This document shows, one piece after another, positions 3,126 through 11,637 of a stretch of 64,000 nt of DNA. Within the stretch, counting starts at the first letter, position 1; each line of letters opens with the position of its first letter. The notes under the pieces are model-generated. The model was not told where the DNA came from. It did no database searches and saw nothing but the letters and a program-made list of their open reading frames with translations. Origin of the DNA: Bugula neritina (Eukaryota; Animalia; Bryozoa); NCBI GenBank assembly GCA_964035545.1, contig OZ037770.1:12886642-12950641 (forward strand), read 5' to 3'. The position numbers were made by a program, and so were the translations under genes.

Positions 3126-6100
3126 TTATTCTCTATATCCATTGAACCCAGGAAAGAGGTAAAGTTTTCTCTTGTGAGTGAGAGTATCCCAGGGTACAAC
3201 CAGCTGTCCACTGTCTAGATTTCTGTCTACACACAGTTTTCTAACTTTAGTCTGCACCTATAAAATTAGATAATAGAACATGGTTACTATAGGCAAGACC
3301 ATGTGTACCTAGACAATATCATACTTGTATCTAGACAAGATCATGTGTATCTAGGTAATAGCATGTGTGCCTAGGTAATAGCGTGTGTACCTAGACTGCA
3401 TGCATTTGCAAACTATTGAAAATAATTCATATTTTACATTATCTACCAAATTAGTTCAAATATTACCAACGGAATTATGTCAATATTATAGCTGTAGAAT
3501 GGAAGCAGGTCAAGACACATATTGGTTCAAAGGGTAACAGCAACAGAAAGGGTGGTAGCCCTACCCTATGAACAGTACCGGTATGGAAATATATATATAT
3601 CTAGAGATGATTTCCTATATTGATAATAATATTGTTAATCTATCATTAGCTGATCGATCTTGGGAGAGAGAGGAAGAGATAGAAAGAGAGAGAAAGAGAG
3701 AGAGAGAGAGAGAGAGAGAGAGAGAGAGAGAGAGAGAGAGAGAGAGAGAGAGAGAGAGAGAGAGAGAGAGAGAGAGAGAGAGAGAGAGAGAGAGAGAGAG
3801 AGAGAGAGAGAGAGAGAGAGAGAGAGAGAGAGAGAGAGAAAGAGAGAGAGAGAGAGAAAGAGAGGGGGGAGGGAAGAGGGGGCGAGGGGGCGAGGGGGCA
3901 AGGGGGAGAGAGAAAAAGAGGGGGGAGAGGGGGAGAGGGGGAGAGAGGGAGAGGGGAAGAAAGGGAGAGAGGAGTAGAGACATTAGGCTCTTGGCAATTC
4001 TCATGTCTGAGAAATAGAAGTCGTGCAAGTCAACAGTATGCTCAATGAGTTGACAACTCCAGTGATCATCATATAAAGCAAAATATTAAAATATTGTTTA
4101 CACGTGTTACCACATAAGTTAGCAGCAGAAATCTGCTACAGACATTAAAATTTCCAGCTGAATTGTGCCGAGCTGACGCAAAGAGAAACAAAGTTGGATG
4201 GAAATCATCGAGCAAAAGCCAACCCAGTAAGTTGTCGTCAGTACAGATACCAACAAGCTGCTCTGCAATGGAACGTGACTAACCTGTTTGAATATAGTGT
4301 AGAGATCATGGTGACCAGCATGTTTATACATTGAAGATACAAGAGCTCTGATCATTAGAGATCCATACACTTTATCTATCTTGGAGGTGAAAGCTAAAAC
4401 AAATATAAACACTTTTATTTTCTTACCAGCATCATGTTGGTGTAATTAAAATTGACATCAACAAACAGTAAATATAAAAAAACTCTTAAAGTGTGATAAG
4501 AAGTTCATTTTGAATATGAATAAAGATGGCATTGGTAGATACTACTAATAGTAACTGGTTACTGCTAGTAGTTACTGGTTACTAGTTACTATAAGCTACT
4601 AGTAACCAGCTACTACTATTAGCCACTAACTACCAGTAACTATTAAACTCACACTCCATGCTAGCTTTCACTACCAGCAGATCATCGTAGTTCAGTCTAT
4701 TCATAGCCTCAGAACCAACTTTTCCAGGAACTTTATCTCCACGAACTTGAGCGGGCAAGGGTGACACTATTTCAGCATCTTCCCTCTGAGCTGGTCCCAA
4801 CACAGATGTTGGGTCAATACCTCTGTCACCCGCATCAATTCTCGCTAGACAACAAATACCCAGCAAACTATGAAAACTATGGTCAAAGTAGTTTAAAATG
4901 TGAATCAGGCGAGGCTAGGCTAGACCTTATTAGGCCAGGCTAAGTCAGACCGTGTTAAGCTAGGCTATGTGAGGCTATGTGAGGCCAGTCTGAGTAAGAC
5001 CATGTTATGTTAGTTTAAACCATGTTGGACCAATGCTAGGCCAGGCTACAGTAAAGTAAGCATCATAATAGTATTTACTTACATCCACTACAAGTTTCCA
5101 GAATGACAATCTTCGGTTTCCCAGCCATCCCGGGGAAGTTCAGTGGGGTCAACAGGTCATACACATCAGTGAGCTTCACTCTCTTCCCGTCTACTCCATA
5201 GATGTAGTTGTTTACACCTCCGTGAGTCATGATCACCAACACGTGACATCCCAGATCTTCATGTTCCTTTCGTTGTACTTCATCTTCCACAGCTGACAAC
5301 ATTGCCTGGAAATAGAAGTCAAACAAGCTTTTAGCTTTCACGAAACCCCTAGATACAACAGTAAATTACAGTCATGAAAAATTGTTGGAACAGAGGTCAA
5401 CACCATGGCTACGTGTGTACAACAAGTGGTACCGGAAGTGTATTTTGTAAAGTGCTAAAAAACGTTAGGCTTTATTGTCAAGACAAAACATTTTCAAAAT
5501 AATGTCAAACAACAAAATATAATATGCATATGAACTGTAACAGCTCAACAAGCACATGCTTATACTGTGCCTATATGATGCTTATACTGTGCTTATACTG
5601 TGCCTATATGATAATTATACTGTTGTTATATCTGGACAAAAAGTTGTTGTATAAAGTTTGTTAGTTTCACTTAACAGAAGATGTATCACAACTAACAACT
5701 ATGCTTAAAGCCAATACTAATTCCTCACATATTCAACGTTGATAGGACAACATCTTACATGAGCACAAAACAACCATTCCTCTTGATATATAAAATAGCA
5801 ACACATGACACCCCAGATATTCGTGGACATCACATTTCACTTCCTCCTTCACAGCAAGCAGCATAGCCTAAGGGTTGACAATTACTTCCATTTTACTGGT
5901 GTAGGTTTTACCAAGGGAGATAATTACATAATTTGTATTTAGGAATATATTAGTTTGCTATCTAGCCCAAACGTACCTCAGCCTGCAAATCTTTTTGTGT
6001 CACAACATCAAACTTGAACTGCTTCAGCATGGTAGACATATTCTCAACATCAACATCTGAACCCTCCCTGCACTCAAATGACTTCTCATCAAAATTCTTG

Positions 6101-9100: not shown

Positions 9101-11637
9101 ACGTTGAATACCTTTGTAGCTTCATCCACAAGAGCGCCTGGTTCCCGGTTGGTTAAAACTCTTTCCTTTTTCGTGCTTTGCAATGTCCTGATAAGACTGG
9201 TCTTTCCAGCCATCGTATTACCAATCACAGCTATTGTAACAAAAGGGAAATTTTTACCTTTCCCTTTTGCCATGTCGATGAAATACTGGCGAATTGCGTG
9301 TTGACCTTGCCTACACACTTCGTATGGCGGCGACGTTATGCTGTAGCAGTTTTCAAGGTTCAACGTCTTGAGTTTTTTCAAGTTCAACAACTCTGGTTCT
9401 AAAGTTGTAAGCAGATTGTTATGCGAGACGTTCAAATACTGAAGGTTTTCCAGAGCATAAACGGATGGCGGGAGAGCAGTGAAATCATTTTTTGAAATAT
9501 CCAGCTCAACAAGCTCTCGGAGATTGGAGAAACTACAAAGATATGATATGATAATTAAACACTTGCAATGGAAAGTTGAATATTAACATCGTATGCTTAC
9601 TGGTGACAATTTACAGCTGAAGGCAGTCATACTAGATAACCAGATACTCACTTTGACGGGAGACTTGAAAGGTCACAGTCGGCCAAGTTCAAGCTGATTA
9701 GTGAAGAGATATAGGACACACAGTCGACACCACCTTGAAGTTCATTCAATGAGAAGTTTAGATCCCAAAGATTAGGCAGATCTTTGATGCTAAAGGCAAG
9801 AAAACAACACACGTTTAACACGCATAACCACAGTGATGGGCAATAAAAATCTAGATATTATTATAATAAAAATATAAAAATTTAAATTAAAATTAATATT
9901 GACAAAGACCCATTGTTTCTGAACAAACTTAACATGGATCAACAAGGTAGGTCAACATAAAAAGATTGAGATTTAAAATAAATTTGAAACATAGATTCTG
10001 AAATCATTTGTTCGGCTTCATGTGACGAGAAAATTAAAGCAACACACAAATAGAAGTTAGTACTGAATTATTAGATATACGTATACCTTTCTGGCAATGC
10101 AGTGATTTGACAGGAACTCATATTCAACTCTTGAAGATTGAGCATAGATGAGAAGACCTCAGATAGATTTGCATTGCAAAGATCATTCCCAGACAAGTTT
10201 AGTTTTACGAGATTTATTAAATTAGCCATACTAAAAATATAGGAACATATGACTCAACATATGAAGGTAATGTGACGGTCATGTGACCTCACATGTTCTT
10301 ACAAAATGAAGTTTCATTTTTCAAAGTCAAAAGCAACAAAGAAAACAAAACAGAATAGTTAGTTGTTATAAAAAAGGGCCACATTGAGACTTGTTTAAAG
10401 TACCTTGAAGGCAGAGTTTGGAGTTGACAGTTATTGACATCTAGCTGCTTCAGTGACACGATGGAACTGATCACTTCTGGTAAACCATCAGAAAACTGAT
10501 TCTCGCTGGCCTTCAACACTTCAAGAGAGCTCAGAGAAGATAAACTACAAAACATGAAAATTTTTCCTAAATTATATAAGAAACAGCAAGAATGAAATGA
10601 CATTCAGTTTCATGCAAGCAAATTCAATGAGGTAAATCAATTGAATGGTGTGATCAATAAATTCTAGAACTTCCTTAGAGTTCAATGGGTGTGACATCTA
10701 TATTGAAACAAGCCACTAAATACTAACCTCCTTGGTAATGTGGTCAACTCAGTTTTGCGAACATCTAGAGTTGTGAGAGACGTGAGATTGGGGAATATGT
10801 CAGGTAAACCCACAGAAGAAAAGTCATTATCAGAAATATCCAGAACTGTAAGCTTTGAGAGCTTATCTACTCTAAAACAAATACACGCCAGTTATTCAAC
10901 AAAAATATGCTAATAAATTAAACGGCAATACCCTAATCAAGTACACAACTCAAAAGATTTATTAATAAAACATGTTTTTCGCCACAAAATGTAATTAACA
11001 TAATATTGTATACGAGTATATTTTAAGATTATATTATATAATGTTAAATTACAAAAACATTCAAACAGTATGATTGAAAGATCAATTAATTGTAAATAAC
11101 AAAATCATAGCACATAATTTCTCTCCCGTTGTTACAGAATTTCATAATATGATGCCTATATTATTATTTTTAAACATATTTAGTGTACAGCAAACTTTCT
11201 AACAATATAAGAAAGTGCCATGTAGCAAAAACGTTCAGCAAAACAGCTACCTTGTCAAGTTTAAGATAAAAGTCACTTTAAATATTGCCTAAAACAACTT
11301 TTACAGCTTCCCTACCACAAGACAGCTTTAACTAGCTAAACAACGAGCCAAGTTATTTCAATAGACAAACTGCATTCATCAGTTGATAGAAAAGTGAAAT
11401 TAATTATGTTTCAACAAAATTAACCTACTGTTTAAATTTAAATCTTTCAATCTCTTCAGGAAAGAGGTTTTTCAAACACAGATGGGTGATGTTAGGAAAC
11501 AGGAAACTAAGGCGGGGAAGAATCCTTCGACTGAGTACGAGGTGTGTTAGTGTGTGAGATTGAACGGCAGCCTCGAGTTGCTCTACAGTGTATTGCTTGG
11601 TGTTATTCGTCATCCACTTTTCACCAGGCTCACCCAT
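3126..11637 (-). CDS. LRR-Roc-COR (ROCO, MFHAS1-like) protein with C-terminal caspase (peptidase C14) domain, ~1292 aa, 13 coding exons
   Basis: Exons: 11637-11429, 10871-10728, 10544-10404, 10230-10087, 9789-9652, 9532-7524, 7340-7251, 6763-6588, 6147-5977, 5305-5083, 4844-4653, 4393-4284, 3257-3126. All introns are GT-AG, phases are compatible, and the total is 3879 nt. LRR: LTVLDISDNDF. Roc: GNTMAGKT, DLGGQ, THKD. COR: LTYMHECGKVLWY. Caspase: RGRALVINNKNF, REGSDVD, MTHG, GKPKIVILETCSG, GSLMIRAL, RKLYLFPG. The N-terminus may extend into further upstream exons. Confidence 0.9.
3295..3396. repeat. ~20 bp degenerate minisatellite (CATGTGTACCTAGACAATAT-like, ~5 copies), intronic
   Basis: Recurring TGTA(C/T)CTAG core at 20 bp spacing. 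Confidence 0.7.
3664..3975. repeat. (AG)n microsatellite grading into a G/A-rich polypurine tract, in the last intron of the ROCO-caspase gene
   Basis: Directly visible; explains the spurious ER/LS-repeat ORFs. Confidence 0.97.

Follow-up and report, generated by a model that had tools for sequence, protein, structure and literature searches.

In bacteria, proteins that join leucine-rich repeats (LRRs), an AP-GTPase (Roc) and a COR domain carry at least 24 C-terminal effectors, a caspase among them (Kaur et al. 2021, PMC8195603). These systems are proposed, as a prediction only, to counter invaders; they have variable LRRs and several paralogues per genome, and the source tables of the same study list the exact LRR-Roc-COR-caspase layout for bacteria, while its source data include a sponge protein (XP_019855546.1) with AP-GTPase, COR, DED, TRADD-N and caspase domains (PMC8195603). 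Amphioxus 'LRRs-caspase' hybrids were noted in 2008 (PMC2575513), and Owenia has one caspase with a ROC prodomain (PMC11463336). Such animal Roc-caspase fusions have been proposed as a shortcut from recognition to apoptosis. Here we analyse a 64,000-nt stretch of DNA from the bryozoan Bugula neritina (contig OZ037770.1 of assembly GCA_964035545.1, forward-strand positions 12,886,642 to 12,950,641; hereafter the window), and we confirm that it contains a real, expressed and spliced gene encoding an LRR-Roc-COR-caspase fusion.

A single spliced LRR-Roc-COR-caspase gene

The gene lies on the minus strand, from 11637 to 3126, and its 13 exons (Table 1) join to 3,879 nt encoding 1,292 amino acids (aa) and a stop codon; all 12 introns are GT-AG and, in a frame check, the joined frame has no internal stop. 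The predicted protein consists, from N- to C-terminus, of about 11 LRRs, Roc, COR, a linker of about 90 residues and the p20 and p10 regions of a caspase. Database searches and Pfam scans were run exon by exon, and the joined protein was used only in local frame checks and comparisons. Pfam finds LRRs in exons 2 to 6 and scores Roc in exon 6 at 26.2 bits, just below the curated cut-off of 27; COR-A is likewise weak and just below its cut-off. These weak scores are settled by the AlphaFold model of the exon-6 product (predicted local distance difference test score, pLDDT, 86), since its first structural matches are Roc-COR structures: the Chlorobium tepidum Roco LRR-Roc-COR and the LRRK1/2 structures, with E 1e-17 to 1e-16 for the Roc-COR of 6hlu, 3dpu and LRRK1/2. 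By sequence and predicted fold, the product is thus a ROCO protein. Its nucleotide-binding domain is a Ras-like Roc GTPase and not a STAND ATPase (NACHT/NB-ARC), and no protein kinase domain was matched in the exons scanned, the rest of the chain being accounted for by the caspase alignment. The original prediction, made from the DNA letters alone, is borne out on this point by the frame, the splice sites, Pfam and the predicted fold, and the G1, G3 and G4 motifs and the catalytic His and Cys all sit where it had placed them.

Part of exon 6 is present in 17 sequencing runs, 13 of them guessed to be RNA and none recorded as such. Evidence for splicing comes from contigs of four probable RNA runs, one per study, which were assembled without strand information from animals about 4-5% different from this genome. 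The contigs cover the exons and almost no intron, and introns 4 to 11 are removed with joints at or within a few bases of those predicted (donor/acceptor 10087/9789, 9652/9532, 7524/7340, 7251/6763, 6588/6147, 5977/5305, 5083/4844 and 4653/4393); loose contig ends at 4282 look like the beginning of exon 13. The three joints leading from COR to the caspase (7524/7340, 7251/6763 and 6588/6147), which the original prediction had named for checking in RNA, each occur in four of four runs. One run yields a 2,291-nt contig from exon 5 through COR to exon 7 and a second contig, of equal depth (442 and 440), that carries on through exon 8 to exon 9; the depth of contigs with caspase exons is inflated by paralogues. 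One contig extends upstream by about 220 letters beyond what exons 1-3 explain. The decayed copy of part of exon 10 in intron 9 has a usable acceptor at 5866, and the RNA contigs show a 5866/5976 joint. Since the copy is absent from the orthologue, this joint probably stems from transcripts of paralogues; if the copy were used here, the product would be truncated and protease-dead.

The linker between COR and the caspase is encoded by exons 7 and 8. Pfam matches no CARD, DED or Death prodomain in exon 8, and exon 7 holds only 30 aa. Folding of the linker and caspase used a Watersipora database protein as a stand-in; in this homologue model, which runs from COR-B to the end, COR is followed by a single helix, an acidic disordered stretch, a short segment that is ordered or helical, and then the caspase fold. 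A death-fold adaptor hidden in the linker was rejected, since Pfam matches none and the homologue model lacks a six-helix bundle, as had been foreseen from the sequence. The end of COR-B, just before the linker (exon 6, about 7690-7530, minus strand), holds an invariant Cys-x-His-Cys and two further invariant Cys, possibly a zinc site.

Table 1. Exons, motifs and other features of the window (all positions are those of the window; strand as read).
Feature	Position	Strand	Content	Basis
Exon 1	11429..11637	-	N-terminal cap, aa 1-69; putative start codon	Conserved in orthologue L032
Exon 2	10728..10871	-	2 LRRs, phase 2-2	Pfam
Exon 3	10404..10544	-	2 LRRs, phase 2-2	Pfam
Exon 4	10087..10230	-	2 LRRs, phase 2-2	Pfam, RNA joint
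Exon 5	9652..9789	-	2 LRRs, phase 2-2	Pfam, RNA joints
Exon 6 (2,009 nt)	7524..9532	-	3 LRRs, Roc, COR-A, COR-B; Cys/His-rich C-terminal end	Pfam, motifs, predicted structure
G1 motif (exon 6)	9222-9199	-	aa 363-370; Lys369 at 9204	
G3 motif (exon 6)	9060-9049	-	aa 417	
G4 motif (exon 6)	8850-8839	-	aa 487	
Exon 7	7251..7340	-	30 aa, short helical linker after COR	RNA joints; one helix in homologue model
Exon 8	6588..6763	-	Acidic disordered linker and short pre-caspase segment; no CARD/DED/Death match	RNA joints
Exon 9	5977..6147	-	Start of caspase p20; S1 Arg1044, codon 6069 (caspase-1 Arg179 position)	Pfam Peptidase_C14
Exon 10	5083..5305	-	p20: His1102 (5224), Glu1144 at Gln283 position (5098), Cys1146 (5092)	Pfam Peptidase_C14
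Partial exon-10 copy, decayed	5775..5867	-	Within intron 9; no His/Cys, reaches a stop	Absent from orthologue
Exon 11	4653..4844	-	Intersubunit linker and first p10 strand	Alignment
Exon 12	4284..4393	-	p10; Ile1218 (4379) at S1 Arg341 position	Alignment
Exon 13	3126..3257	-	Last p10 helix and strand, stop codon	Alignment
Long CT microsatellite	3640-3990		Within intron 12	
Open reading frame	60837-61910	-	Retrotransposon integrase core	Pfam rve
Exon of unrelated neighbouring gene	31705-32037	-	PWWP domain	

The caspase domain and its substrate pocket

Pfam Peptidase_C14 matches exons 9 and 10 well above the cut-off, and the best matches of the caspase part are CED-3, caspase-8 and caspase-2, which places it with the animal p20/p10 type. 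The Watersipora homologue model superposes on caspase-9, CED-3 and caspase-8 with template modelling (TM) scores of 0.84-0.88, by target. The catalytic dyad is kept, His1102 and Cys1146 aligning with His237 and Cys285. When the S1 pocket is compared with those of caspase-3, -2 and -8, the equivalent of Arg179 is retained (Arg1044), Gln283 is replaced by Glu1144 and Arg341 by Ile1218; the Arg286 position is Ser, and the catalytic motif reads ETCSG rather than QACxG. The orthologue (L032, see below) has the same pocket residues. In a paralogue sample biased to close caspase matches, the Gln283 position is Gln in none of 31 genes (Glu in 29, His in 2), the Arg341 position is Arg in 12 of 22 and Ile, Ser or Val in the other 10, and the catalytic Cys is present in 30 of 31, the remaining gene having Ala. 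Watersipora relatives keep Gln and Arg or Lys at the pocket positions, and the amphioxus Roc-caspase protein has a canonical pocket.

An Asp at the usual cleavage position of the intersubunit linker is found in 19 of 21 sampled genes and is lost in the Cys-less copy. In the gene studied here this Asp is followed by Pro, and caspases usually reject a Pro after the cleavage-site Asp. Because two of the three Asp-binding pocket residues are changed, a standard Asp specificity is doubtful for this copy and canonical caspase activity is not assured. We therefore do not class it as a canonical caspase; its protease domain has the caspase fold and an intact dyad, with a specificity that is probably non-standard.

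Among the relatives, the Cys-less paralogue (L039/L062, G000:C8:8282477) has Ala for the catalytic Cys and Asn for the linker Asp, its frame being otherwise open in the exons seen, and is a candidate decoy. The best Peptidase_C14 match in the genome is an intronless, full-length caspase-family domain with unusual motifs in the catalytic region (L021, G000:C4:5000994-5001812).

A receptor-like family with apparently exchanged caspase ends

An orthologue of the gene (L032), from another lineage, lies on a 22-kb metagenome contig with 13 exons, all splice sites and no stops. The ratio of nonsynonymous to synonymous substitution rates (dN/dS) between the two is 0.26 overall, with 0.17 in the LRRs, 0.41 in Roc, 0.25 in COR, 0.27 in p20 and 0.14 in p10, values that point to purifying selection on the caspase exons, His-Cys dyad included.

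A search of the genome with exon 6 recovered at least 69 scored paralogues among 136 candidates; they are 49-54% identical, have an internal stop in only 2 cases and are clustered in tandem on contigs C1, C5 and C6. When the coordinates of the two genome searches were compared by eye, a caspase catalytic exon was found on the same strand downstream of all 69 Roc-COR exons, within 8 kb for 66 and at 11-16 kb for 3. Among named sequences, the closest relatives belong to Watersipora subatra and Bugula neritina. Two Watersipora RefSeq models (XP_067947674.1 and XP_067948342.1, of 1,419 and 1,413 aa) combine LRRs with Roc-COR and an entire caspase, as does a GenBank Bugula model named CASP8; the full-length Watersipora relatives were found by profile search and missed by a word-based search with a Watersipora LRR-Roc protein. 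The fusion is therefore common to at least two cheilostome genera.

Across 28 paralogues the Gly, Lys and Thr of G1, the Asp, Gly and Gly of G3 and the Thr, His and Asp of G4 are invariant, while, in the last three LRRs, entropy reaches 2-3 bits at the variable positions, compared with 0-1.3 at those of the framework. The LRR exons are all in phase 2-2, a layout permitting shuffling; LRR exon shuffling has been proposed for brown-algal ROCO receptors (PMC3341825, PMC11378527). The view that the family is immune-receptor-like is supported by its copy number (at least 69), its clustering in tandem, and LRR surfaces that vary on an invariant GTPase core.

The caspase ends appear to have been exchanged among paralogues, because the tree of Roc-COR conflicts with that of p20. 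In one Roc-COR clade with good support, switches that are 90-91% identical carry caspases of two clades that are 39-42% identical (over 46-119 aligned residues, with partial exons in some pairs). Conversely, the gene studied here and a neighbour 17 kb away share 52% identity in Roc-COR, where the former is a long-branch outlier, and 84% in p20. At the DNA level, its exon 10 is 0.91 identical to that of the neighbour and 0.90 to that of its own orthologue, and in exons 9-10 the synonymous divergence (dS) from the orthologue is two- to threefold that in exon 6. The simplest reading of these comparisons is that caspase exons have been recombined or gene-converted between paralogues. Neither this apparent exchange nor the altered pocket had been noticed in the original prediction.

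Proposed mechanism and relation to known systems

We propose that the protein is a single-chain Roco with an animal-type caspase as its C-terminal effector, part of a repertoire of LRR-triggered, adaptor-free, proximity-activated proteases, a reading to which we give a probability of about 0.55. The caspase sits at the C-terminal effector position, where LRRK2 carries its kinase. A cytosolic LRR arm would bind a ligand, either a pathogen product or a non-self marker, and binding would shift the nucleotide cycle of Roc-COR and hence the balance between monomer and dimer; the flexible tether of about 90 residues would let two caspase domains meet without an adaptor, and the paired caspases would cleave a substrate and so set off cell death or defence. 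The family as a whole would then amount to a repertoire in which the sensors vary and the protease ends are exchangeable. The C. tepidum Roco, the best structural match, is dimeric in its empty and GDP-bound forms but monomerises with GTP (PMC5714945), which makes the direction of the switch relative to protease activation uncertain. A wider proposal, which we put forward tentatively, is that cheilostomes use some 70-130 single-chain, GTPase-gated, adaptor-free protease receptors, in which variable LRR-Roc-COR sensors are recombined with alternative caspase-fold cassettes whose S1 pockets have diverged from Asp specificity. As an animal system of immunity or allorecognition, these receptors would parallel the NLR inflammasomes and converge on the predicted bacterial defence design.

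Several observations weigh against a protease receptor of this kind. Apart from the altered S1 pocket and the Cys-less paralogue described above, the LRRs are not fast-evolving between the two orthologues (with a dN/dS of 0.17, no positive selection between lineages is seen in this pair), so that variation is found among paralogues only, and the RNA link between COR and the catalytic exon is made by a series of overlapping contigs, none of which covers the whole distance. The last point touches the suggestion that an LRR-Roc-COR gene and an adjacent caspase gene have been joined on paper only. An in-frame stop (7516) does lie just past the exon-6 donor, and some Watersipora annotations split the two parts, but read-through to that stop, which the original prediction had named as fatal to the fusion, was not seen: among the contigs listed, those of the COR exon break off at 7522 and continue in exon 7. 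With the joints of introns 6, 7 and 8 in all four runs, matching contig depths in one of them, splice sites conserved in the orthologue and full-length models in Watersipora, two separate genes are largely refuted already and extremely improbable. In one of the split annotations (L031:10001-34096), 38 nt separate the end of a Watersipora LRR-Roc model from a caspase model annotated on its own, and the DNA continues through COR; this is likely one gene, split by annotation or broken.

The pocket bears most on the idea, unlikely in our view, that this and other pocket-altered copies are weak or dead pseudo-proteases acting as decoy, guard bait or cFLIP-like heterodimer partner. The replacement of two Asp-binding residues here, the frequent loss of the Arg341 residue and one Cys-to-Ala change among paralogues, and the Pro after the linker Asp would all fit such a role; yet the dyad is kept in the orthologue and the Cys in nearly all sampled genes, the caspase exons appear to be under purifying selection, and the linker Asp is retained in most genes and missing in the Cys-less copy. 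Quite unlikely, too, is an inverse switch, with the resting Roc-COR dimer separating or inhibiting the caspases until GTP-driven monomerisation, or higher-order clustering, for instance on a membrane or pathogen surface, releases them, and with Roc-COR serving as gate or scaffold. The GTP-bound monomer of the C. tepidum Roco speaks for it, but initiator caspases generally require dimerisation and a long flexible linker is poorly suited to keeping caspase domains apart. A function in non-immune programmed cell death or in remodelling, as when polypides degenerate and regenerate or at metamorphosis, or else in colony allorecognition, rather than in pathogen sensing, seems improbable. Caspases serve development widely, bryozoan colonies cycle their polypides, and the gene was found in probable RNA runs of four studies; at least 69 copies with diverging LRR surfaces and exchanged effectors would nevertheless be unneeded for a developmental switch. 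If the proximity-activated protease receptor that we favour is correct, it would offer a natural test of a long-standing question about LRRK2 and other ROCO proteins, namely how the Roc-COR nucleotide cycle affects a C-terminal effector, the caspase giving a read-out that is simple and depends on dimerisation. Animal sensor-to-caspase signalling would also gain a third switch chemistry, beside STAND ATPases and death-receptor clusters. Natural variation in caspase substrate pockets is available in the family, which is also a candidate immune repertoire in a phylum whose immunity is little studied.

The bacterial LRR-Roc-COR-caspase proteins have a domain order identical to that of the bryozoan protein; unlike them, the bryozoan gene is intron-rich and its caspase is of the animal p20/p10 type. 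Because the caspase is animal-type, the bryozoan fusion looks independent of the bacterial one, which argues for convergence; our trees were built without bacterial sequences. The amphioxus, Owenia and sponge fusions also place Roc(-COR) ahead of a caspase within a single predicted chain but, unlike the bryozoan family, are single models or brief mentions and not expansions. In Branchiostoma floridae, the model XP_002614028.1 has the LRR-Roc-COR-caspase layout; its identity with the 'LRRs-caspase' of 2008 could not be confirmed. In quick trees with long branches and SH-aLRT (Shimodaira-Hasegawa-like approximate likelihood ratio test) support only, its Roc-COR clusters with amphioxus proteins that have OTU or GT4 ends, and neither that domain nor its caspase joins the bryozoan clades. 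The tree of neither domain thus supports orthology between the bryozoan and amphioxus fusions, and the Roc-caspase fusion probably arose more than once. In amphioxus, the C-terminal ends of LRR-Roc-COR proteins are an OTU protease or a GT4 glycosyltransferase; in Lingula they are CARD-like domains (P0113, P0190, P0142, P0103, P0162, P0181). These ends match the variable-effector pattern of the bacterial AP-GTPase systems and, judging from such predicted proteins, the variable-effector Roco design is widespread in invertebrates.

The original prediction knew of no characterised animal protein with this architecture and named an existing description in the literature as grounds for refutation. 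We found no experimental test of the LRR-Roc-COR-caspase layout, and PMC8195603, PMC2575513 and PMC11463336 hold no functional test; the refuting condition nevertheless applies in part, since those three papers describe the layout in bacteria and related animal fusions. No account of the bryozoan family was found in the open literature (subscription papers being outside the scope). The layout is thus already on paper, and the bryozoan expansion, the exchange of effectors and the diversification of the pocket appear undescribed.

MFHAS1/MASL1, LRRK1/2 and DAPK1 share the LRR-Roc-COR core and its fold with the bryozoan protein, and differ in what follows: they end without an effector, or in a kinase or a death domain, where the bryozoan protein has a caspase. 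Many relatives are annotated automatically as MFHAS1 homologues. Identity to an amphioxus MFHAS1-like protein is about 23%, and the bryozoan Roc-CORs form their own long-branch clade; given the C-terminal caspase and a clade separate from the amphioxus MFHAS1-like proteins, the gene is not an MFHAS1 orthologue. The LRR-ROCO candidate immune receptors of brown algae are, as here, an expanded family with modular LRR exons; a few of them carry a C-terminal non-caspase peptidase, and no caspase is mentioned (PMC3341825, PMC11378527). The bryozoan genes differ from them in having two repeats per LRR exon and in that the evidence for exchange concerns the effector end. With the NLR inflammasome and the Apaf-1 apoptosome, the bryozoan protein shares the logic of a repeat sensor, a nucleotide switch and a proximity-activated caspase; it differs in that the switch is a GTPase instead of a STAND ATPase, that no CARD, DED or Death adaptor intervenes, and that the protease is part of the same chain.

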